NCBI GenBank assembly: GCA_001655205.1
Contig: LPNZ01011243.1
Location: 1-41,895 of the forward strand
Source: Lenisia limosa
Lineage: Eukaryota; Protista; Breviatea
Direction: 5' to 3'
DNA: 41,895 nt
Position 1 is the stretch's first letter. Every line of letters begins with the position of its first letter. Positions 2,113 to 28,460 of the stretch are shown one piece after another. The notes beneath the pieces are model-generated. The model did not search any database, had not been told where the DNA came from, and saw nothing but the letters and a program-made list of their open reading frames with translations. A program made the position numbers and the translations under genes.

Positions 2113-5100
2113 ATGTACAACAACCAGTTAAAGCGCGAGAAGCGAAAGGGTGAGGATGAGGAGAGTGAGCGAAAGAGAAGGAAAGAAGAACGGCTTTTAG
2201 AGCTTGAGGTAAGGGAAATGGTTTCGAGTTCTTTTCTGCCTGCTCTTCTAATCGAGTTTCAGAAGAATCCTTCTCCTGAAGTTCGTAAGTACGGTTCTAC
2301 ACAAAAATGCGACGATGATGAAGGTCATTTAATCATAAAACCAGGAGACTACATTACCCATGAATGTAGGTCTCTTCTTCTTCCTTCCCACTCCTATTTA
2401 TCTTCTATTATCCAGCATTTTCATTTTTCCTGTGTTAATTTTTCTAGATAAAGTCATGGGTCAAATTGGAGAAGGTGAGTGATATTGTGTCGATTGCTTT
2501 GGCGCCCTTTCATAGCTGTTCTCCCAGGCCTTATTTTTTTACAACTAATTTTCTTTAGGAACCTTTGGAAGGGTTGTTGAGTGTTGGCAAAGGTCAACAA
2601 CTCAGCGTGTCGCCATCAAGGTCATTAGAAATGTGCCAAGATATCGCGAGGCAGCAAAGTGGGTTCATATGAAATATCCCAGCACGTCTAAAGTTATTTC
2701 CACAAGTCTCTCTCTTTAATTTAAGGGTTTTTGAAACAAATGAAGCGGTTTCCGAATGTGTCTCTTCGTCAATCTCAGGCACCTTTACTTTAAACAATGC
2801 AGGATTGAGATCACTATTGTTGAATTTCTTATGAAGTATGACAAAGCGCAAGAATGGTGAGTGACCTATTTAACACTCAGGTGTTATTATCAAAGGAATA
2901 TAGTTTTCTTTTCCGCGTTTTCGTGGCATTATAAAACATCTTAGGCATTGCATTCGACTGCTCGATCGATTTGACTTCCGAAACCATGTTTGTATGGTAT
3001 TTCCACTCTACGGACTATCTATTTACGACTTCCTCCGAACTAACAAATTCCGGTGAGATATGGGAATGTAAGGTAATCTCTTCTGTTTGATTGCTTCGGC
3101 TTGATTATTGATCTTTTTCATTCAACATTGGCTTCAGTGTTTTATTAGCCAGCCCCTTCCGTCCCGATGACGTTCGCGTCTTTGCGCTCCAACTCACCCG
3201 CGCCACCAGATGTGGGTGTTACTTGACTGTTTCTTACTGAGTTCATTTTTTAGTTATGCACAAACTTCGCCTTATCCACACCGACCTCAAACCTGAAAAC
3301 ATTCTTCTTGAACAGTCCAATTACCGATACGTTTGTTGGGTCAAAAATTCTTGTCTCTCGTCTCTTGTGTGTCTCACAAATGATTTTTGATCAAGTGAAG
3401 CTCTCCAATGTTAACTCTTTAGGATGACAGTGATGGACGACATACGAGAATACCCCTTCTCAAAACACTGAAGGTTGGACAAACTTCTGCGATAAATTGT
3501 ATAATTGCCGTATTGAAAAACATGAGTCTCCCATGTAACTAATTGTGTTTTTGTGTTTTATCTTTTTCCAACCTTTTTATTTATGCAAAGTAATATTCGC
3601 CTTTCGCATAACAGTCCCAGGTTATTGATTTCGGTTCTGCCACATTTGAATACGCCTACCATACTTCCATTGTTTCAACTCGACACTACAGAGCACCTGA
3701 AGTCATTTTAGGTAATTCTTTGGGATAGTGTATGGCTTTGTTTTGAAAGATTCCTTTATTGTGGTGCTTTAAACGATGCCTACATTATTGACCTCCAAGG
3801 CCAAGACTGGTCATACCCGTGTGATATCTGGTCAATAGGGTGCATCTTGGTGGAACTCGTGACTGGGCGGCCGATCTTCAACACCCATGAAAATCTTGAA
3901 CATGTCTGCTTGAGTGGTCTCTTCCTGTTACACCAATCTCTTGTTCTCCGTGCCTTTAATGACCCTTTAGTTGCATATGATGGAGAAGTACCTTGGGCCC
4001 ATCCCCCTTGAATTCAAAAAGAAGTCTAAGTATGAGGGGGGGATTGTCTTTATACTACACTGTGAAATACGTTTGTTGTTTTTATTTGAGTTTAAGAATA
4101 ATAATATAATCTAAGATAACTAATAATTTTGCTTGATTTTGATTAAGCAAAGCTAAAGAAATGTGATAAACTGTATTCATAACACATTTCCCGAATTATC
4201 GTTAGCATTACACTTGGAGGGTGATGCTCATAATTATACCGTCCAGTGAGACCACATAAAGAGTATTTTGTACAAGGAATTCCGTGGTTTTTCTAATATA
4301 TTTACTATCATTGGTGAATGTGAACCGTTGTTCCCCACTCCTTACTGTTTAGTCCCGTGTTGACAAAGTACTTTGACGATAAATGGAACCTCAAACCCGT
4401 AACTTCAAAATCCGGCCAATCCAGAATCGATGCTATTGTTCCGCTCAAGGTATGAACTCGACCTCGTCAACATTGTTTATTCTACTTTTGTTCTCGTTTT
4501 GACAATACAGAATATGAAGTACGACCCTCTGTTTGTAGACGTAGTGTCGAAAATGCTGTGTTTTTGGTAAGCATTTGAGTTTAATAGGCAAAGAGATGGT
4601 TATCATACTACATCGATATAGAGATATAGAACAATAATAATAATATACATAGGGGGGGGGGGGGGNNNNNNNNNNNNNNNNNNNNNNNNNNNNNNNNNNN
4701 NNNNNNNNNNNNNNNNNNNNNNNNNNNNNNNNNNNNNNNNNNNNNNNNNNNNNNNNNNNNNNNNNNNNNNNNNNNNNNNNNNNNNATCCTTCACCATGAC
4801 TACTTCGGCTGTGTTGTGGCCAATTCAATGGACGAATTACTTATTGGTCTACAGCAAAAGGAAATCGAAGAAGTTGGACCCATCCCAAAGGTTGGTGGAC
4901 ATACATATGATACAGTTTATACCCTGACGTGCTGATTTTTCAGGAATTCTTGATGAAGAAGACGGAGTCCCAATAAATCCTCTTGTTCAACCCCCTGTAT
5001 TTTTGTGTTTTCTTGCCAGTGCCATTATTATGTATCATCAATGGTTTAGTAAATTGGGCTATTACTTCAAAGCAATCTTGAGAAAATAGGAACCAGCCTT

Positions 5101-5352: not shown

Positions 5353-8300
5353 ATGTCTGCACGAAGGAGAGTCTCGTTTAATGAGATCCCCGTTGGACCA
5401 ACGCGCATCAACCAGCGCGAGAGGGAGAGGGAAAGAGAACGGCAAAGGGAGATCGAGAGGGAACAGGTTTGCTGCTCAGAAATCGCCTTTGACTGCTTTC
5501 TGTGCTCATATGTTTGTAATTTAGTATATTAACATAATACTATGGGTTTTTTTTTGTCACTTTCTACTCTTTTGAACAATAACGTTTGCTCTTCTTTATT
5601 GTCTTAGAAGAAGAAAGCCCCACCTGTCAATCCCCTTCTGAGTCTTGTTGGAGGTGATGAAAGTGAACCGCCAACACCAAAGAAGAAAAGTACGAGTGGT
5701 GGTGGATATTTTTAATCTGAAAACTAGATGGACGGTTAACGTTCTTAGAAGTGCTAAAAGTTATGGCTGGCCTCCTTGGGTCGGACTCAGACTCCGATGA
5801 CGACAATTCTGAAGATGATGCTGAAGATGACACCCCCGAAGACGTCCCAGAGAAACGGCCATCGCCTGTCTTCTTTCAGCATGCCATTGGTGGGGATGTG
5901 GGGTTTAACGTTTGTTCTGACTTGTCGTTTCTATTATTATCAAAAGTGTATTCATACCCCCCCTATCTTAGCACTAGTGCACCCCCCAATGTATCAAAGC
6001 ATAACCAGTTTACTATTCAGGCCTGGACTCGGTGCAGAAGACAACGTCCATTCTCAAGCCTCCCTCCTCTGACATCCTGATTGACCACTCGCTCATGACC
6101 GACATGACCGGAAACGATGCCGCTGAATACACTCTCAGCTCGGTTTGGGTGGGGCATTCTAATGAGCTAATAGTAGTGGTATTTGCCTCTGATAGGTCTG
6201 CAGAATATCAAGTTCCGCTCTGAACAACATGAACAACAAGAACAAGGGCCAGCTATCTCCGAGCCATCACCATCCCCGTCACCACCACCCGAGGAGGCCC
6301 GTCCTCCACCTGTTGTTGCTACCCCTACACAAGAGCCTGTCCAGGTTAGCACCTTCAATCGGACTTTTTTTACCAAAGAGGAGTTCAGAAGGTTATGGAT
6401 GGACCAGGTTTTTTCTACGTTTCCACATGTTATCGATAAATACTGGAACTGAGTATCTGACAAAGCAGGTTCGATTTGTTGCGCCATCTTCCGCAGGTCC
6501 GCCCACTTCATTCGCCCGGCCCGATATGCCACGTGCTGAACAGTCGAAACTGGAGAAAACTATGAGGTAAGCAAAATACGGGTTGGTACCGCTGTGATAA
6601 TCAGGTTACATGTGTGCTACATGCCATCAGAGAATCATAGAGAAGATATGTACATGTATATGAGCAAGGGGCCTCAGATCTGGGAATTTTTTTGATGATG
6701 ATTTTTTTCGGAGATCGACTTTTTTAGATTTGTCAAAGATACAGAGATCTGTCGGAGATCTAGCTCGTGGACAATACAAAAACATTTTTGACACTTTTGG
6801 AGTCCGATAGTCGGGAGACCTATCAGAGATCTGGGGATCTTCAACATATCGAATGCTATATCACATTTCATCCGTACGATCTCATGTGTTTAGGGATGAG
6901 GCTTCTTCAGGAATTGTTGAGAAAGTTGAAAGCTCTTCTGGTTTGTGGATACACTTCAAATATTTTAATATAATATACTAATATGATCAGGGGTGTTTTC
7001 TCTTTGGAAAGCACAACCAAATGGATTGTGCAGTGTCATTTTCATGCTAAAATCGACAATGTAGGAAAGTGGGACCATCTTGGAGGAGCATCGACAACTG
7101 TTATCCTTCCGCTGAGTATAGAGGATGAAGCAGACGAGAAAGAAGAGAGTGACGAAGAAGAAAAGCCCATTGCAATGCCATTGGACAGGTATACATATAG
7201 TAGTACTATATATGAATGGTTCATCTTGTTTCCTTTTTATTGGCAACTTGCACTCTGTGCAGACAGTAAATGATTAACAGACTACTATCAATATCTAAAT
7301 ATCATCGAAAAACAGTATATCATATGATATTTCTTTACCATTGCCTCAGGGTTACTGAAGCTTTTGTCACGGGTATTGACGTGATGTTGACACGTTACCC
7401 TCATGAGGACCAAGCATGGGGTGCATCCAGTGACACCGAGGATGAAACTTCTTCACGCAAATGTTGGTTGTTCTGTGAAACTAAATGATATGATATATGT
7501 TTTATTTTGTTGTTTGCTTTGTCATGAATTGCAAACGTCTCAATATTGTTATAAACGGACTAAGCTCCAATATCCTCACTCACCCCACCCCCTCCCCAGC
7601 CGTGGTATCTGAGAAAGACGACACTGCCAGCCTGGAGGAGCTTGTGGCTGAAGTCCGGTCCGGCATGGACTTCGCCCTTCATTCGCTGACAGCCACCATC
7701 TCCCTGGCCGACCGGCTTGGGGGCAAGGAAAAGGTCGAGGCCGACAAGAAGGCCGCCGAACAAAAGGCCCGCGTGGCAGCCCTCAACAAACAGCGCTCTA
7801 AGATGCTCCAAGATGCGAGAAAGGTGGGGATCTTGCTGGGACCGGGTGCTGGACATCTTTGTGTTTCCCTTTGAATGCAGACTGAAAGCGTCAACTTCAG
7901 CTGTGGTGCGACCTTTATCTCAAGGAGTGGTTGAAAGCGCTTTGGGAGGGGCTTTTATTCAGAGGGGGAGACCACCGTTGTACGTTTCTTTATATGAGTG
8001 ATATTGTGGATTCATGCTTTTATTGAAGAAAGTGGACAGAGTCACAAGAGGTATGTAGTGCGGTATCATATTTCGACTGTTTTTCTCCATCAAATGTCAA
8101 GGGAAAATAATGATTCAGCTTCTTAACATATGACACACACTGTCACTTTTCTCATTTTTTAACTTACTCTCAGAAGATCTCATCTTTTATTTTCTTCACA
8201 CATTCAGATTGTCCAACAAGCAGCAAAGCAAGACACCCTTACCCCCACCCCATTCCTACCCCTCGACCCATCCACCCGATCCTCCGACGAACGGATCAGT

Positions 8301-10429
8301 TCTAGCTCAAGGTCTTCGAAGAGGTCGTCAAGCTCGTCGTCTAGGTCGAGATCCAGCTCAAGGTAGACTCGGTCTGGTTTTTGACTTGATATAACTCTAC
8401 ATATATGAATTTATATCAAGTCTGGTCTGGTTTTTGACCCATTAAGCTTCTCGGCCTTCCATTTATGTTTCTTCCTTTTTTATTCAGCAGTGGACGGTCA
8501 TCATCAAGTCGGAGCAGCCGGCGGCATTCGGAGAAGGACTCAGAAGAAAGGTCGTCAAGATCAAAGTCATCACACAGTAGGAGTAGTAGCAAGGGAAATA
8601 GTAGTAGGAGTTCAAGGATTAAAAGGCCAAGGTCTTCATCCAGGTCCAAGTCCCCGGGTTCAAAAAAAAGAAGCAGAAATGAAGATGACAATGCTGAGAT
8701 TGTTGAAGAAGTTATCGTGGAGACCAAGGAGGAAGAAGTCATAGACGTTGAGGAAGGAGAGGTAACTGAAGATGAAAGTGAAGAGAAAAACGAAGTGGAG
8801 GTTGAGGAAAAAAGGGGTGAAGGGGATGGTGAAACTGAATTGAAAAAAGAGGTAAAACCTGAAGAAACAGAGGAGGAGAGAAGGCCAAGAGAAGTTGTGG
8901 AAGAGGTTGAAGTGAAAACGGAGAAACCTGTGTTGAACCTGTTTGGAGGATGTGACAGTGAAGAAGAAGAAGAAGAAGAGAAAAAGAAAGACTTGAAAGA
9001 AACGACTGAGGTAGTTGAGACCAAGGAAGAGAAGAGAGACAACAAAGAAGAAAGGGAAATGAAAGACCATGATTTATCAGTTGAGGCCTTGAAAGAGGAA
9101 GGTGAAGTTGACGAATCAGCGGAGATCTATTCCGAGCTTTCGAAGCTGGAAAAGGCTTTTGACGATGGAGAGTTTGGAGCTGAGCCCGCGCCACCAGTAC
9201 CGATTGAGCCATCAAGATTGGACAAGACTTGTGTTTGGGAGTGCATTGAGTGTCCGTTGCTCCCAACGGGGGTGTGGGTTCAATACCAGAAGAAGCAGGA
9301 GGAAAAACGTGAGAAAGCCGGCAATGAAGTTGATGAGTTCACAGCAATGTTAGAGAAGACTGAGAATGGTGAAGCAAGTGAGGAGAAGCAAGGAAAATGG
9401 GTGTCAGAAGATCAGTTAGAGTTTGAGGAAGCCCAAAGCAACAGGTTCTTGCCTAATTTGGCAGTAGAAGAAATCAAACTACGCGCTCGTATTGAGGTGA
9501 GGTTGGAGTAAGCTTTGTTTAAGGTAGTTCAGTCCTTTTTTTGATTTTGGAAAAAATAAAACTACCCGGCGGAATTCCGAAGGCTCATTGTAATTACTTA
9601 CTTTGACTATTTTTTTCCAAGATCAAAAAAAGGATTGAACCACCTTAAGTCATTCGACTATTCTCATTGCCTTAGGATTGGGAGGAAGGAGCGTTGGCAC
9701 CAGCTTACCTTCGGAACACTCTTCAACGAACATCTGGGACAATTATCGACGTTTTGAAGGCGGCCAGTGAGGGGGGGATTTATCTTAATATTTGAAGGAC
9801 TCCAACTCTATTCTCTCCCTCTTTCTCATAATCTATATTTTACAGACAGCGATTGGGGTTTTCGTTTTTCATCTGCACTGACTTACTTAGATTTACGTTT
9901 GCCCTACAATTGGACAGAAAAAGGAACCGCGTCAATGACGGAGTCTGCGAAGCCTCCACCCCCAGGTTGGGCTATACCTCCTCATTTATCACCCTGCAGA
10001 AGAACTCAATAAGATCTTTATCTTCCCCGAAGTAATTGAGAAGTCTGCTGAAATGTTCCCCCCCGCCCACCCCAAAAACAAAACCGAAGACGCGGCTGAG
10101 TCTGAACAGTGGGTATTGAGGCCTTACACCATTTGCTCTTGGATTGTGTTGCAATCAAGGTTCCTTTCCTTGTAATACTGTATGTTCTCACCCATATTAG
10201 AGATATCACGTCGCAAGCATTTTATTCGGTGTTTGACCAGAACTACAACGCCTACTATTACCTTAACAGATTTACTGTAAGTGGGCGTTCCATATTATGT
10301 CTCTTCTTTAAACAACCATTTTTATTTTGCACCTTCCTCATGTATCACTCATCATTTCAGGGAGACGTGTCATGGACTCCGCCAACATCTGATGAGGTAT
10401 GTTTTTTGGCTCCCAAGCTAATGCGTTAA
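5353..10429 (+). CDS. Large low-complexity protein: N-terminal RVxF motif, central RS-rich and Glu-rich regions, C-terminal WW domain (may be two genes)
   Basis: A phase-consistent exon chain can be built from MSARRRVSFNEIP (ATG 5353) through SSRSSKRSSSSSSRSRSSS, the 8465-9496 E-rich exon and DWEEGALAPAYLR to FYSVFDQNYNAYYYLNRFTGDVSWTPP (WW-like). 3' end uncertain, near the gap at 10585. Confidence 0.6.
9523..9644. mobile_element. 122-bp MITE-like element with ~40-bp TIRs and TTAA target-site duplication, in an intron
   Basis: TTAA(9519-9522)|GGTAGTTCAGTCCTTTTTTTGATTTTGGAAAAAATA ... TATTTTTTTCCAAGATCAAAAAAAGGATTGAACCACC|TTAA(9645-9648); arms are reverse complements with 3 substitutions and a 1-nt homopolymer difference. 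Lies in intron 9497-9675. Confidence 0.8.
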
Positions 10430-13941: not shown

Positions 13942-14289
13942 GGTTACCCTTTCTTGCTATCTACGTGAAGCAATTGATCACCAATTGATTCCTCCAAAAA
14001 AAAGCAGGGAAAACGGCAAGGCTTCAGCAGGATGCAGGAACTACAACATCAAGCAAGTTGGAGGAAAGATTGTTTCTTCTCTTGCAGTTCTCTGGTCTCT
14101 GTGTAGTACAAGTGTAGTACAGACAGAGAGAACAATGAATGGAAACGAAAGACAGAGAAATGTGAGAAATGAGAGAAGACTAAAAGACAGTATAACACTG
14201 GTCCAGTTCTCAGACCGGATTCAAAAAATTACGGCGGCGAAGCAGAAGAAACTTTCATCGGCTGTTATTTTGGATCACTTCTATCGTAT

Positions 14290-14371
14290 GACTAGTTGGC
14301 CGAGTGGTTAAGGCGACAGATTAGAAATCTGTTGGGTTCTGCCCGCGTAGGTTCAAATCCTGCACTAGTCG
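14290..14371 (+). tRNA. tRNA-Ser, anticodon AGA
   Basis: Acceptor stem GACTAGT/ACTAGTC, discriminator G, D-arm TGGCCGAGTGGTTAAGGC, anticodon stem ACAGA/TCTGT with loop TTAGAAA, long variable arm, T-loop GTTCAAATCC; 82 nt, no intron. Confidence 0.97.
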
Positions 14372-14372
14372 A

Positions 14373-20816: not shown

Positions 20817-23360
20817 CTATGGCGACTCACCTTCGGTCGGTGAAAGCCGCTTTCGTGGAGCCAAAATGCTGACATCCATACGGAGTGCCTCACCTTGCTG
20901 AGCCCCTGAAACCATGAAACTCTGCCTCAAAATAGATTCTCGGAGAGCAAATATCTGACCTTCAAAGAGGGAGTGGTCAAGAGCTTTGTAGACGACATTG
21001 GCATCTTCAATATTGGCAACGGTGATCACAGCCTTGCCCTGCAATCATAAGTTTTGGAAGACCTTTTCAAAAAGACTCATACAAAATCAATACACCTCCT
21101 GCCTATCTCACACAGTCAACTCACCTGGCAGTTCCCTGAGGCATTCCTGAAGACTACCGGCTTGGTGTACTGAGAGATTCCACATTCATAAACCATACGA
21201 GTGATTTGCGACTCATTGGTGCGAGATGGTAAACGGGCAAATTGGATAGTGACTCTAGAAAGTCAGCACTGAATCATGAAAGAAGAAGACGCACCCATTA
21301 GGGAAAGAAACGACTGGGGGAGGAGGGCCTCGCCGCTTGGGTGACGGTGAGCGTGAGCGAGAGAGTGACCGTGACATTGACCGTGGAGAATATCGCCTGG
21401 TGTTTCGCGAATTGTAGCGACGGTTACTGTTGTGATCAATCAAAAAATTGGGCTGGCAAAATACTCCAATCAGTCTCAAACATTTCCTGTATTCCAATTG
21501 CTATGATATTGGAGGTGGAGGGGGAGAGTAAAATTGAAAAATTAATGAAACAAAAAAACCCAAATCAACTCTGTTGGCTGGTAACACACAAGGGTTGATA
21601 ACAACAAAACAAAAAAAGCCCAAGCCAGTAGCTTCTGCAACACCGCATCCCATCACTGGGTGAAAGGTAGGGAAGCTCGAGCTTACTCTCTTTTGCCTCG
21701 GTTGTTATTATTATATCGCCTGCGAACTGGACTGAAACTTCGGCTTCGGCTTCGACTGCGCGAAATACGCGAATAGCGCGAACCAGACGTGGGTCTGAAT
21801 TGTAAACCGTTGCCAAACAATTTTCCGTCCGGATGCAATACTAACCTTGACCTTGACCTGCTACGCGACCGTGAGCGCGAACGCGACATTGAACGAGACC
21901 AGCGCCTAAAGCAGATTATTGGGTTGCCTATACCTCAATGTTGTAAAACCTCAAATAGATAATTCACAAAAGGGGGTATTGTCACAGTGACACACCTTCC
22001 CTGTGGCCTGTAGCGCCTCCTAGGTGACCTTGAACGGGACCTTGACATCGAGCGAGAGAGTGATCTGACGATCAGAAAATACCGCCAAAGGAGACATTAT
22101 TACTCCAAATCCAATATTCCTTATATCATATTCGATCAAAGCACGTTAGAATTGTACGCAATACTTACCGTGACCTTGACATTGATCGGGATCGAGAACG
22201 GCGATCACTGGTGTGGTATTGAGACTGGGGCTGGATCTAGGAGGTCAGACTGTTACTCAAAAAGCATGCAAATATGATTAAAAATGTCAAGAAACAAACT
22301 AAAGATGCTAACTCAATGACAACAAGCAGCATTTCACTGTCGAAACAGAAGAATCTACTCACAGGGTATTGGATAGTAGGGGGAACTGGGGGCTGATTTT
22401 CGTTGAGGGAAGCGAGAATAGATGGAGTGAGGCGACGAAGGTCAAAGATCGCAGATATGGCCGCAATAGTGGAAGGGAATGTCAGGGTGGCTTTACCTAG
22501 GTTGTAAGTGGAATAGTGTTACTGATGTGTCACAGAATAAGACAGATTTTTCAATAAAACCTCCATTGATATCGATATTACACAGTTGCAGTTTCAGACC
22601 TCTGAGGGCAAATGTTATTGATGAGGGGTTGTGCGGGTGGATGTAACTTCTGAAAGCAGCTTCAGAGGACTAAAGAGTTACCGAAGCAGATGTCAAGTAG
22701 CAATGTAACCCGAGCCAACAATGTTAGAAATGGTATGTACGAGGGTTGGTCCGACTTCTTTGGCCACACTCTGGCTGACAAGCGCGGGAATGACCTTGTT
22801 CGCTTTGGGGAAGTTACCTGCGAACAGTTAATAAAGAGCGTGAGGCCCACATTCACACACTATCATCGAGTCCCCTCCACCTTTGGAAGCATTTGGGTCT
22901 GAAACAAATGACTGAGGGGGCATTTGTCGGAACTCCACTGCGAACATGGGTGTATGTTTACCCAGCTCTATACAGTCCAACTGATGCTTAGCGTTCACTG
23001 CATCTTGCCATGACATCATAGTCACAAAGCCAAGCCCTGAACAGTGAAGCACATCGTACTGGATACTATATTAGGATTACATGAATGGGAATACACAAAA
23101 TGATAAGGTAACGGCAAGGAAAGAAGATGTAATCACCCATTAAAACCCGCGTTTGCCCAGTCAACCTTTACTACTTTCCTTGACAATCTAAAATGTTAAA
23201 ACATAAAGGAACCATCAAAAAGTGTACGTATTCTGACCATTCAGTATACCTTAACACGGTTGACTTGTCCAAAGAGCTCGAAGAGCCCTCGAATGCCATC
23301 CTGCGTTGCTCCATCAGGAAGACCGTGGAGAAACAAGCAGGGGTGGTCCCCCGAACTCAT
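20817..23360 (-). CDS. SR-like RNA-binding protein: RRM, degenerate RRM, RS domain, RRM
   Basis: RRM1 LFLHGLPDGATQDGIRGLFELFGQVNRVKIVKESSKGLGFVTMMSWQDAVNAKHQLD; RRM2-like RGKATLTFPSTIAAISAIFDL; several RS exons (RSRSRSMSRSR, SRSRSRSRSRSR); RRM3 IQFARLPSRTNESQI...CQGKAVITVANIEDANVVYKALDHSLFEG. ATG 23360 (an upstream exon is possible). Confidence 0.8.
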
Positions 23361-23749: not shown

Positions 23750-26618
23750 ATGGCAATGACTGTCTTTTACTGTGAGTCGAGATTCCAATTTCTACATTAA
23801 ATACTTTGAACTAGGAATAAGGGTTATAATATTAACAATTTACAAGTTTTGTATTCATATTTGACCAATTCAGATGAGTGGATTAGGAGTATCGTATCAG
23901 CCCTCTTCTTACCAACCCATACATTGCCAAATTTACCGCCAAATAAAATATGGATGGTATGAAACTAATAATTTTGCATTGGTTGAAAACCAAAGTATTC
24001 AATTCTAATCATGATTCTGCTGAAAGTGAATAAGGATGACAACCTAACAGGTCCGAACTTATCTCAGTATCCTCTTGGGGGTTGCGGCCTTTACCCTGTG
24101 CAAAAGATCCCTAGCCGTAGCCGGGTCTGACATGGTCTTCAAAGGCATTGTAAGCTCTGTCTTAAAGGGATGGAAGGTTTTGCAAAATAGTATATTAGGC
24201 CATCATCATAACCTCTTTTTGCGCTCTTTTGACAGCTAAGGTTCCCGACTTTATCGTTTAGGTTGACATTAAGATGTTTGGACTTCTTAGTAGCTGCTTC
24301 AGTATCGCGTTTTCTATCTCAAAGTTATTTGCTGGTGTGTGGAGGGCATTGAAGTTATTTGCTAGTGTGTGGAGGGCATTGAAGTTATTTGATGGTGTGT
24401 AGAGGGCATTGAAGTTATTTGCTGGTGTGTGGAGGGCATTGAAGTTATTTGCTGGTGTGTGGAGGGCATTGAAGTTATTTGCTGATGTATGGAGGGCATT
24501 GAGTAACTGATGACAGTGCATGTATGTATAATGTCAGATTATGTCATACTTTGTTGATGTATAAGGTTTGGTTTGAATCCTGGGTGAAATAGGATATACA
24601 TAGCTATCATTCTGTTCGTAATGAACAACCCATCTTATAATACGGCTAACACTCTAGCTGTTCTGAGTGACAATATGAGCCCGAAACTGCTCTACTGTTC
24701 AGGTGTATTGATAAGGTTGGTGATTTTTTGTGAAGTTCTGCATTTTTAGTGCTTTTGCTTTTCACAGTCAAGCGGTGTCTGCTGCTTAATCATGGCATTG
24801 GGTGTGTCCAATCACAGCTTTTTCTTTGACAGCTTTGGACTCGATCCATCTCTTGTTATGATTGGCACTTGGAGTATTGTTGGAGTGATTCAGGTATCTT
24901 GGGCTATATTTTTTAGTGATTTCATTTTTTAAAATTAGGCTGACACCTTAGAGCCTAGGATGGGGTCCAATCACTTGCATGCTCACCACATGGTTTCCAA
25001 AGGTTTGCCTGTGTTTTGTCTCCAATATATCTTATTATATTGATCTTGAGATCACGAGTATCTTCGGAATTCAGTTCTCTAGACATCACGAGGCACTTTG
25101 TGGTCAATCGCTGCTGCTATACAGCCCCTCTCTTTTGCTGCCTTACAAATGGCTAAGGATATTCACTTTCTGTAGGAAGGTCATTTATTTCTATTAAAAA
25201 TTGAAAAACTCTGATGCTTTGACAATAATCATTTAGAAAAACAGGTGATGAAGTTTTCCTTTTCTCTGGGCTTTTTTGTGTTGCCAGTTTTCTCTACACG
25301 TTAAATCGCTATCATGATCCAATAAAGGTAAAGGTGTCGCTTGTTTTGCCATTTAAGTGATCTTGCTAGTCTGAGAGTGAATCGATATCGCACACGATCT
25401 TCAAGCCAACCACCCCTGAATATTCTGCCACCCCTTCTTCAAATTACCACCACTGTTTTTTGGGGGTTCCCAAAGCCTCTGTACCTCGATTGTCGCTCGC
25501 TGCTTTAGAGGGTTGTTTCCTTTATTCTCTTAGGTTGGTAGCTATATAATGGGTCAGAAACAAATAACATACGGGTATTTTTGTATCCCTGTCGAAAAAG
25601 TTTCACAACCTCCAGAACATGCCTGACCGAATGGTGGCCTGTGCTTTACCCGGAATTCGCCAAGTTGGATGGAAGCCTATTCCTTATTGAAACCACTGTA
25701 CTGGTCATTGTTTTAAGATTTCAATGGGTGTGTTGACCAGTCTTACCTTTGTAGAAACGCCATTAGTTACAGTGAAGTTTCTGGAGTTATTGGTGGCATC
25801 CTTGCAGGGGTTCTATCCGGTTTGTAATGTGACTCAAGAGTGATTAGATGTATACGGTATTTCTCTCATGAAATGGGAGTGGTGCATAGTTGATTGTAAT
25901 TTTGACTCTCACCTAAGTTACTTTTTTTTAGATAAACTCTTCAAAGGGAATCGTATGACTTGTGGCTTTGTCTTTTGCGTCTTTATGGTGATAGCAATAA
26001 AACTGATTCAGGTAAGAACTGTCAATTAAAGTTGTTCAACTATCGATATGATATTGATATGCGTAGTACTCAGTTATCTAGGTTCATCCTGATGTCCCTC
26101 TGGCTTATGTAATTTTTGGTAGGTGGTAATATATTATGTATATGTACGAAATGACAAATGATATGTTCTGACGATGACAGGGGTAGCTTTTTACGGGCCA
26201 CACACGCTGACCGCCTTGGTCGGGGTGGAGGCTGTGGATAAGAAATCCACAGCAACAGCGGCGGGGCTTGTTGGNNNNNNNNNNNNNNNNNNNNNNNNNN
26301 NNNNNNNNNNNNNNNNNNNNNNNNNNNNNNNNNNNNNNNNNNNNNNNNNNNNNNNNNNNNNNNNNNNNNNNNNNNNNNNNNNNNNNNNNNNNNNNNNNNN
26401 NNNNNNNNNNNNNNNNNATCCTCTGGCAGTTCTTGCCGCTCAGAATCCTTATATTGTGCACCACGTCATGACAGCTCTTTCAATAGGTATGGGAAAGAAA
26501 TATTTTGAAAATAGAATTTATGTCAGTCTCCATTGTGTCAACGTTTTACTGTCAAGGTTGTGCTGTTATCTACGCCCTGTTTCATCATCCCTTTTTCCGG
26601 AAGCCTATTTTTTCTTAG
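23750..26618 (+). CDS. MFS organophosphate:Pi antiporter (GlpT/UhpT/SLC37 family)
   Basis: Spliced: RTYLSILLGVAAFTLCKRSL, FGLLSSCFSIAFSISKLFAAVLSDNMSPK, QSLGWGPITCMLTTWFPKTSRGTLWS, YSEVSGVIGGILAGVLSDKLFKGNR, FYGPHTLTALVGVEAVDKKSTATAAGLVG, paralleling GlpT motifs (QGMGW, ERG, SDKVFRGNR, YGP..L...ALELAPKKAAGTAAG). One gap at 26275-26417. Confidence 0.88.
24322..24501 (+). repeat. Tandem repeat, 6 x 30 bp, spanning an exon end and 5' splice site
   Basis: Unit AAGTTATTTGCTGGTGTGTGGAGGGCATTG with 0-2 substitutions per copy. Confidence 0.95.
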
Positions 26619-26788
26619 ATTGAATGGTAGAGATATTATGTACTACTGTGAGTGAGTTTAGTTTTCTTTTGGCAAGACGGATAGTACATGTTATTTTGTT
26701 TTTCTTCTTGGGCTACCATTATAATGGAAATCTAGAACTGCACCAAAACTGTCTGAAACCTTGGAAACAATCATGTCTAATTCACAAC

Positions 26789-26897
26789 ACTGTGCTCTCC
26801 TCTCAGAATCCAAAGGTCCCCTGAAGGTCAAATTGGTAACCAGGCACTTACTTGGGGCTTTGCTTTAGACTCGTCACCACAATTGGAGATACAATGT
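26789..26897 (-). promoter_or_regulatory. SECIS element in the MsrA 3' UTR, apical loop interrupted by a putative 31-nt intron (26851-26821)
   Basis: Helix I UCUCC(26889-85)/GGAGA(26800-796) with extension; core GUGAC(26877-73)/UGAG(26805-02); helix II GAGUCUAAAG/CUUUGGAUUC (10 of 10 pairs, 2 G-U); unpaired AAA(26861-59); after splicing the apex reads GCCCCAA|GGGAC. Confidence 0.85.
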
Positions 26898-26986
26898 GGA
26901 AGTCCTGCAGTGTCAAGTTTGGACAGAAACATCAAAACAAGGCTAGAATGCCCAATGTTTCCACCAACCTCAAGATTGTTCCATGC

Positions 26987-28361
26987 TTAGTTGTTAAATA
27001 GGTATTTTTGGTGGTAGTCTTCAGCGAGGTAAAAGTCCTGAAAAGGGTTTATTTGGGTTGAGGGGTTGAAACAGTCTGCTATCGTCTTAAAAAGGCTCAT
27101 GCATTTCGCCAAAATCCCTTCAAACAGTTACTGGCTCGAGACTGGTCATACACTGGGGGTTTTTCGCTTTAAAGTGAGCCAACACCTCCGAAGCCTCAGA
27201 CTTCTGCGTTCTGTGTGGTAAGAAGAAAATTACTTGGGCGGAGTAGAACAGATTTGGCATTTCTAATTTGGTGTCCTGAGGAACTATATCAACACATTTT
27301 TAAACATCAAAAACAACTTTATGAATTCTGTCAGAATTAAAAACTTGGGACTACCATATTGTCGAAAAATAGTAGAATAATTTATTATTAACTGTAGCTT
27401 TCTAAAAACCTTGGATAAAATAGCTCAACGGTATAAAATAAGAAAGAACTCTGCCAATATGCTTACTTTCCTGAGTACCAAATAGCCGAGCGATACTGAC
27501 ATGCCCTTCTTCCATAGCTATCATGGTTCTCCAACATTGTCTAAACAGACGTGAAAAAGCACAACATTAGCTGAAAAAAAAAATCAGCCTTAAGGTTAAT
27601 GGTAAGAGATCCCTGGTCACAAACCTTCACTAAAGAGAGGTATGAAACAACAGAAGGGTCGAAATCAACCTGTTTTGTCAACAATGATATGAAAATAAGT
27701 GTGTTCAAAATAAATGCTTGCTTCCGATCAGTGGAACTCCAAATAAAAGCTTGTTAAGACAAAAAGGTACAGATGAACTCAATCATTTACCTCATCTGCT
27801 TACACAACAATATGCAGAAATGTCATAATAAGAGAGAATGAATCCATGTTTTGGCATACCATTATAGATTCAGTATGATCTCCCATGGAGTGGTATGACG
27901 GGTTCTTACTCTGACCCCCTGATTATTAGAGAGACATTAGTTCATGCCACCTGCCACCTTTCACTTACCTGAATATCCAACCCGAGTATCAAGAACACCC
28001 TTGACTTTCGAGAAGAGGACTTCAGGGTGCCAGAATCACCCCTGAATTATTGAATTATAACACAATTAAAATAATCAGTCGACTCATAAGATGGTCCTTT
28101 GGAAGTTGGAGTAAAACATTGTATCCAAATTATAACCTTGAATTACATCATTATTTATCGCAAAGTTGCTTCCCCCTTTTCCATAAAACCATATGTGTGA
28201 TATGATGAATCAGATATTTATTGAGAAGCAACGATTTAAGGCAATAAACTGCTTGTTCACGATTGCTTCTGTATTAAAATAAATCCCATGCAAACCATTG
28301 CAAACACAGCAGCTTGGAAAGACGCAGTGAAGGCTTTCTTAGGGTAGATTGAAAGAGACAT
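26987..28361 (-). CDS. msrA: Selenocysteine-containing peptide methionine sulfoxide reductase A (7 exons, ~150 aa, Sec24)
   Basis: Exons 28361-28296, 28041-27969, 27918-27860, 27669-27625, 27540-27467, 27210-27126, 27037-26987 join in phase to MSLSIYPKKAFTASFQAAVFAMGUFWHPEVLFSKVKGVLDTRVGYSGGQSKNPSYHSMGDHTESIMVDFDPSVVSYLSLVKTMLENHDSYGRRACQYRSAIWYSGKTQKSEASEVLAHFKAKNPQCMTSLEPVTDFYLAEDYHQKYLFNN. TGA at 28038-28036 replaces C of GCFW; VGYxGG, NPxY, DHxE, QYRS and FYxAExYHQKY motifs intact. Confidence 0.93.
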
Positions 28362-28460
28362 TGGACCTCTTGCACTATATTTCAGCTATATTTTGTGTAT
28401 ATTATTATTCCCAATATATTTCTCCTAAAATAATGCTTGTTTCAAGCAAATTCGGAAACA

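Follow-up and report, generated by a model that had tools for sequence, protein, structure and literature searches.

A 31-nt spliceosomal intron in the apical loop of a putative SECIS hairpin in an MsrA gene of Lenisia limosa

The MsrA gene and its transcript

The window, by which we mean the whole 41.9-kb stretch of Lenisia limosa DNA analysed here, carries on its minus strand a gene that, judged by its sequence, is a selenocysteine (Sec)-type MsrA with the motif G-U-F-W-H-P-E (Table 1). The assignment follows from the position of an in-frame TGA, which occupies the alignment column of the catalytic Cys in the GCFW motif of homologous proteins. The Pfam family PMSR (PF01625) matches the part of the protein after the TGA with E = 1.3e-31, covering profile positions 9-146 of 153, and a TGA is found at this site in two short, intronless MsrA contigs as well (L001 and L002). 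When the open reading frame downstream of the Sec codon was used as query, the closest relative in the protein collection shared 54% identity; the frame itself is absent from that collection, no self match being returned. Sec-containing MsrA is known from Chlamydomonas and from bacteria. The present gene resembles these in its PMSR fold and in the replacement by Sec of the catalytic Cys in G-C-F-W, but differs in being an intron-rich eukaryotic gene, with eight introns and an apparent SECIS in the 3' UTR.

The gene structure was read from a polyA RNA contig of 661 nt (record 2 of RNA run X1, depth 48.3), which matches the genomic sequence with 0 mismatches in nine pieces separated by eight joints, all of them GT..AG on the minus strand. 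The corresponding introns measure 254, 50, 190, 84, 256, 88, 64 and 31 nt. An mRNA rebuilt from the genome without these eight GT..AG introns is likewise 661 nt long, identical to the contig, and contains a 150-codon open frame with one internal TGA. Run X1, a polyA 'metatranscriptomic' library, and DNA run X2 come from the same 2016 study, and only one RNA run contains the MsrA locus. RNA depth in X1 is 0 inside all eight MsrA introns, so that this run's sequence at the locus is not DNA contamination.

Table 1. Positions of the MsrA transcript, its exons, the introns of its 3' UTR and the parts of the putative SECIS hairpin (position 1 is the first letter of the window)
Feature	Position	Strand	Details and basis
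MsrA transcript as assembled	26736..28413	-	9 exons, 661 nt spliced; RNA contig (X1 record 2)
Coding exon 1	28296..28361	-	start ATG at 28361, 5' UTR up to 28413; RNA contig
Coding exon 2, with predicted Sec codon	27969..28041	-	RNA contig and rebuilt mRNA
In-frame TGA (predicted Sec, residue 24), motif G-U-F-W-H-P-E	28036..28038	-	translation, alignment, Pfam
Coding exon 3	27860..27918	-	RNA contig and rebuilt mRNA
Coding exon 4	27625..27669	-	RNA contig and rebuilt mRNA
Coding exon 5	27467..27540	-	RNA contig and rebuilt mRNA
Coding exon 6	27126..27210	-	RNA contig and rebuilt mRNA
Exon 7: end of CDS, stop TAA (26989-26987), first 18 nt of 3' UTR	26969..27037	-	RNA contig
First 3' UTR intron, 64 nt, GTTGGT...CTGCAG	26905..26968	-	RNA joint skipping 64 nt
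Exon 8, 53 nt: helix I 5' strand, G-UGA-C, helix II 5' strand, AAA, CCCC	26852..26904	-	
31-nt spliceosomal intron in apical loop of putative SECIS	26821..26851	-	RNA joint skipping 31 nt
Last exon as assembled: GGG, helix II 3' strand, UGAG, helix I 3' strand	26736..26820	-	
Putative SECIS hairpin, whole, genomic	26783..26898	-	~85 nt after splicing
Helix I, UCUCC / GGAGA, plus lower extension	26889-26885 / 26800-26796	-	
5' core, G-UGA-C	26877-26873	-	
Helix II	26872-26863 / 26815-26806	-	10/10 standard pairs
C-AAA-G	26862-26858	-	unpaired AAA 26861-26859, 13-15 nt past the A of UGA
CCCC	26857-26854	-	
GGG, 3' strand of mini-stem after junction	26820-26818	-	
3' core, UGAG (GA of tandem G.A pairs)	26805-26802	-	

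The exon bearing the Sec codon has a predicted fold of its own (73 nt, z = -2.55, 4 of 200 shuffles being equally stable), in which a small stem, GGGUG/CACCC, loops the UGA and a longer hairpin directly follows. This modelled fold could be a structure of the Sec-redefinition type or just a by-product of conserved codons. A hairpin also lies right after the UGA in L001.

Converging on MsrA is a plus-strand transcript (record 1 of X1, 1004 nt, depth 12), which covers 26555-26676 and is joined from 26484 to 26555 across a 70-nt GT-AG intron. Its end at 26676 lies 60 nt from that of the MsrA contig, and an N gap at about 26273-26420 is found just upstream of its 26555-26676 piece.

A metagenome search with the MsrA alignment returned 80 loci (L003-L082, on JGI/ENA contigs), or 82 with L001 and L002 included. 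TGA occupies the catalytic Cys site in 61 of these 82 MsrA loci of the same subclade (G-TGA-F-W-G-P-D...). Many of the metagenome loci lie on sediment contigs of 20-110 kb and those with TGA are probably bacterial Sec-MsrA genes; since the loci are mostly bacterial-looking, they are uninformative on eukaryotic SECIS elements and on the positions of introns. No close relative of the MsrA gene was found in the metagenome search, and the 28-nt 5' arm of the SECIS had 0 exact matches when the metagenome contigs of JGI were scanned. The 3' hairpins of L001 and L002 were dropped as comparison SECIS elements, the eukaryotic or bacterial origin of these contigs being uncertain. Gene callers had either read the TGA as Trp (P0001) or begun the protein after it (P0004), and truncated post-Sec MsrA ORFs also occur in the transcriptomes of one choanoflagellate and one amoebozoan.

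The 3' UTR hairpin and its intron

The assembled 3' UTR is 156 nt long after splicing. In the spliced mRNA a hairpin begins about 25 nt past the stop codon and has its G-UGA-C core at nt 46; in the genome it lies approximately 110 nt past the stop of the only gene in the window with a Sec-type TGA. The spliced hairpin has the features of a type II SECIS, namely helix II, unpaired adenines and a helix III with a small loop, and we infer from this sequence that it acts as the SECIS of MsrA. Eukaryotic SECIS elements recruit the SBP2/EFsec machinery, and the UGA is read as Sec. The preliminary description of this DNA had named helix I, the core, a 10-bp helix II and the AAA as parts of the element, and each of them is present in the sequence where it had been placed.

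Both strands were scanned with a rule requiring R-UGA, pairing at nine or more of the ten helix II positions, AA at 11-15 nt, and GA. The scan gave three strict matches in the 41.9-kb window, one of them being the single candidate in the MsrA 3' UTR, which alone has 10/10 helix II pairs in the about 84 kb covered by the two strands. The pattern matches at 6896+ and 21365+ were rejected as chance occurrences since they do not fold as hairpins.

Stability was assessed on the 89-nt stretch formed by 26900-26781 without the intron. The minimum free energy of this spliced hairpin is -26.5 kcal/mol (z = -1.7), a value equalled by 29 of 500 dinucleotide shuffles, and the unspliced 120-nt hairpin gives z = -0.86. 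The three adenines at 26861-26859 are unpaired in all folds. The last position of the 3' core is G where the consensus has A/U, so that a U.G closing pair stands in place of U.U or U.A; the GA/AG pairs are possible. At E <= 10 Rfam gave no SECIS match in the genomic, unspliced sequence 26600-27100, and at gathering thresholds it reported only a tRNA, and no SECIS, in the whole window. These negative results have little weight, since the 3' regions of the TGA-containing MsrA contigs L001 and L002 gave no SECIS match either.

The two halves of the hairpin are separated in the genome by a 31-nt intron, GTAAGT...TTGACCTTCAG, with donor GTAAGT, acceptor TTCAG and a branch-like UUGAC 7 nt ahead of the acceptor. 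In the RNA contig, 26852 is followed directly by 26820: contig positions 85-137 are 53 nt and correspond to 26904-26852, leaving no space for extra letters at the junction, and the joint (CT..AC on the plus strand) is present in run X1. Since the contig skips 26851-26821, it is splicing that puts together the mature type II SECIS; the element is split by a real intron and takes its canonical form once this is removed. This splice had been predicted correctly to the base in the preliminary description, which considered that spliced RNA across the interval might be lacking or that the transcript might end before 26800. Such spliced RNA exists, and the contig reaches 26736, past the hairpin. As for the layout of the UTR, the 31-nt intron had been recognised there, but the 64-nt intron and the separate 53-nt exon had been missed. 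Because of this upstream intron, the 5' half of the SECIS stands alone on the 53-nt exon.

With its 31 nt, the intron is the shortest of those defined in the window, the other MsrA introns being 50-256 nt long and those of a kinase gene described below 88 and 67 nt. That an intron of 31 nt might be too short for splicing is ruled out by the joint in the RNA contig.

In the spliced form, the apex between the strands of helix II is 16 nt, containing C-AAA-G and a CCC/GGG stem with a CAA loop. This is a textbook type II apex, with CCC, a 3-nt CAA loop and GGG; a compact, type II-like apex with a CCC/GGG mini-stem had been expected to result from removal of the intron. In the unspliced form the apex is 47 nt, and helix I, the core, helix II and the AAA are likewise predicted. 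There, the CCCC pairs with the last intron G and the GGG (4 bp, CCCC/GGGG), and the 33-nt loop thus closed comprises the 31-nt intron together with two As of the exon ahead of it. The mean pair probability of helix II, taken from the partition function of the whole UTR, is 0.97 when spliced compared to 0.93 when the 31-nt intron is retained. As the SECIS parts are predicted even with the intron present, these models describe the intron as an insertion into the apical loop which does not disrupt the fold. Retention of the 64-nt intron lowers the predicted helix II probability to 0.13, and the fully unspliced UTR gives 0.03. However, the fold containing the SECIS is only 2-4 kcal/mol above the minimum when the upstream 64-nt intron is kept, so that its competition is treated as a passing observation.

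Comparison with known elements

Eukaryotic SECIS elements have a UGAN/KGAW core with tandem G.A pairs, conserved apical adenines and, in type II, an extra helix (PMC3753652). The MsrA 3' UTR hairpin resembles a type II element in its helix I, UGA/GA core, 10-bp helix II, adenines and mini-helix, about 9-14 bp being the expected length of helix II between the core and the apical motif. It differs in having G before the UGA and UGAG instead of KGAW, and also in being non-contiguous in the genome, with its halves on different exons. For comparison, introns in the 3' UTRs of selenoprotein genes are known, and every vertebrate SECIS is confined to a single exon, including in genes with a split 3' UTR (PMC3316567). 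In a human GPx3 variant, splicing deletes the SECIS and the unspliced form is functional, whereas in MsrA splicing completes the SECIS, and what is observed is the spliced form.

Some tRNA genes carry an intron in the anticodon loop, which is cut by the tRNA splicing endonuclease. The likeness to MsrA lies in the interruption of a loop in a structured RNA, where a flanking helix holds the exon ends before cutting; the difference is that the MsrA intron has spliceosomal GT-AG signals and is located in an mRNA.

A full-text literature search, with most subscription journals outside its coverage, found no paper on an intron inside a SECIS, in agreement with the preliminary description, whose author knew of no such case. 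The intron-split SECIS is a real variant and apparently new to the literature.

The presence of an intron in the apical loop

With eight introns in 661 nt of mature RNA, MsrA has one intron per 83 nt, and the UTR (2 introns in 156 nt) is as dense in them as the CDS (6 in 453 nt). At this density, about one intron is expected in a hairpin of 89 nt, and no special explanation is needed. Our preferred reading, to which we assign a probability of roughly three in four, is that the mini-intron is neutral and constitutive, in a gene saturated with introns. The 31-nt mini-intron would then be an ordinary one lying in the SECIS apical loop by chance, probably spliced constitutively and probably present merely because the gene is saturated with introns, not for regulation. 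The pre-mRNA contains two 3' UTR introns (64 and 31 nt), and removal of the shorter joins CCCCAA to GGGAC, making a compact type II SECIS with a 10-bp helix II, unpaired AAA, a 3-bp mini-stem and a 3-nt loop. The SECIS would recruit SBP2/EFsec, and the UGA at codon 24 would be read as Sec.

The density of introns leaves the position of this one unexplained, the junction falling exactly within the 3-nt apical loop (about 1 in 20 hairpin positions). As a single case, the position could hint at selection for a site that keeps the unspliced RNA foldable. More speculatively, an intron may have been gained into an accessible loop, or a formerly longer apical extension may have been intronized.

It is scarcely credible that the 31-nt gap results from faulty assembly or from a deletion allele and not from splicing. 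The splice evidence consists of one assembled contig from one RNA run, but the gap is bounded by GTAAGT...TTCAG, seven more exact GT-AG joints on the same contig restore the MsrA reading frame, and the length of the contig agrees to the base with that of the predicted mRNA. Furthermore, DNA run X2 contains the stretch in entirely unspliced form, with joined forms in 0 contigs, so the short form is neither a genomic allele nor a processed copy. A hairpin that is not a working SECIS, the real element being elsewhere or the UGA not being decoded as Sec, is most unlikely. It would account for the lack of an Rfam SECIS match to the genomic form, for the G in the 3' core where A/U is the consensus and for a stability only modestly greater than that of shuffles. 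Against it, the hairpin is the sole candidate in the UTR and the sole perfect helix II match in the sequence scanned, and the TGA takes precisely the place of the catalytic Cys in an MsrA that is conserved, expressed and correctly spliced; the Rfam blank, seen also for L001 and L002, may reflect limited sensitivity.

The preliminary description had gone further, proposing that splicing both assembles the canonical SECIS and gates UGA read-through. The assembly stands; the gating is unsupported, there being no retained contig and helix II probabilities of 0.93 and 0.97 with and without the intron. In its wider form, the idea would be that SECIS activity changes when the 31-nt intron is retained under regulation or the 53-nt exon is skipped, and that UGA read-through in MsrA is thereby tuned against termination or decay; we consider this unlikely. 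The SECIS is indeed split between two exons, with its 5' half on a cassette-like 53-nt exon, and 3' UTR splicing decides the presence of the SECIS in the human GPx3 variant (PMC3316567). The spliced apex is canonical, and the unspliced apex of 47 nt would fail the apical-length filters by which SECIS predictors remove over-long loops, although this is a filter and not an assay (PMC3753652). Yet no intron-retaining or exon-8-skipped contig is present in run X1, where contigs drop minor variants, and retention leaves the predicted core and helix II fold unaltered. As the predicted fold is nearly equal in the two forms, structure does not demand a gate, and intron density alone accounts for an intron here; the switch is rated low because it is required neither by the structure predictions nor by the density of introns. 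A further proposal concerns the exon junction complex (EJC), which in vertebrates is deposited some 20-24 nt upstream of junctions and contains eIF4a3 (PMC5133445 and 10.1101/677666), a protein that represses Sec insertion there by binding to certain SECIS elements (PMC3177196). By analogy, an EJC, with eIF4A3 as its core protein, might be laid on the 5' strand of the MsrA SECIS core and couple Sec decoding or NMD to splicing history. The five letters at -20 to -24 relative to the junction read GACGA, comprising the GA of the UGA in the core and the first bases of helix II; the junction itself is 71 nt past the stop codon, beyond the 50-55-nt rule. We regard this as very unlikely, however, since it extrapolates from vertebrates to a breviate protist over a very large phylogenetic distance, since loading requires single-stranded RNA and the site is in a stable hairpin, and since exons of 45-86 nt throughout the gene would put junction marks everywhere. 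In mammals, eIF4A3-SECIS repression and NMD link a splicing mark to the fate of selenoprotein mRNAs, as described in PMC3177196, PMC4105750 and PMC5133445. There, eIF4A3 needs no nearby junction to bind the SECIS, whereas the MsrA junction would place the EJC site on the core itself. Overall, a functional split, in which 31-nt retention, 53-nt exon skipping or an EJC on the core couples Sec decoding or decay to splicing, appears decidedly unlikely.

More probable than a functional split, though still somewhat short of an even chance, is that other SECIS elements in the same intron-saturated genome are also split. Should this be so, SECIS elements of this genome that look non-canonical may in some cases be unspliced ones that were misread, and genome-based selenoproteome counts in such protists would be too low. 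SECIS elements are usually treated as contiguous 3' UTR hairpins, and SECISearch3/Seblastian and Rfam models are run on genomic DNA. The present case is an expressed selenoprotein gene with a SECIS that is canonical only after splicing and whose genomic form is missed by Rfam, so that the selenoproteomes of mini-intron-dense protists could be under-counted. Unless transcripts are searched, a split SECIS in such protists could be described as aberrant.

At the level of the pre-mRNA, the apical loop is predicted to tolerate the 31-nt insertion. The gene is therewith a natural construct for asking whether apex length matters to SECIS function, and likewise for asking whether an exon-junction mark on the kink-turn core interferes with SBP2 binding. 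The latter question ties in with what is known of eIF4A3 at SECIS elements and of NMD in selenoprotein mRNAs.

Elsewhere in the window, a tRNA-Ser with anticodon AGA and a long variable arm lies at 14289-14372 (+), scored at 60.1 bits by Rfam and also found by ARAGORN. Exons at 3620-4030 (+) appear to encode a CLK/LAMMER-like protein kinase, with the motifs DFG...APE, then D-I-W-S-I-G-C-I, then L-H-M-M-E-K; its GT-AG introns are about 88 and 67 nt. Long open frames rich in Arg/Ser and in Glu, at 8465-9511 (+) and 21686-21934 (-), probably encode SR-type splicing-factor-like or low-complexity proteins. Finally, the open frame at 24261-24533 (-) contains a repeated 10-residue unit, NNFNALHTPA-like, which points to a 30-nt tandem repeat in the DNA.
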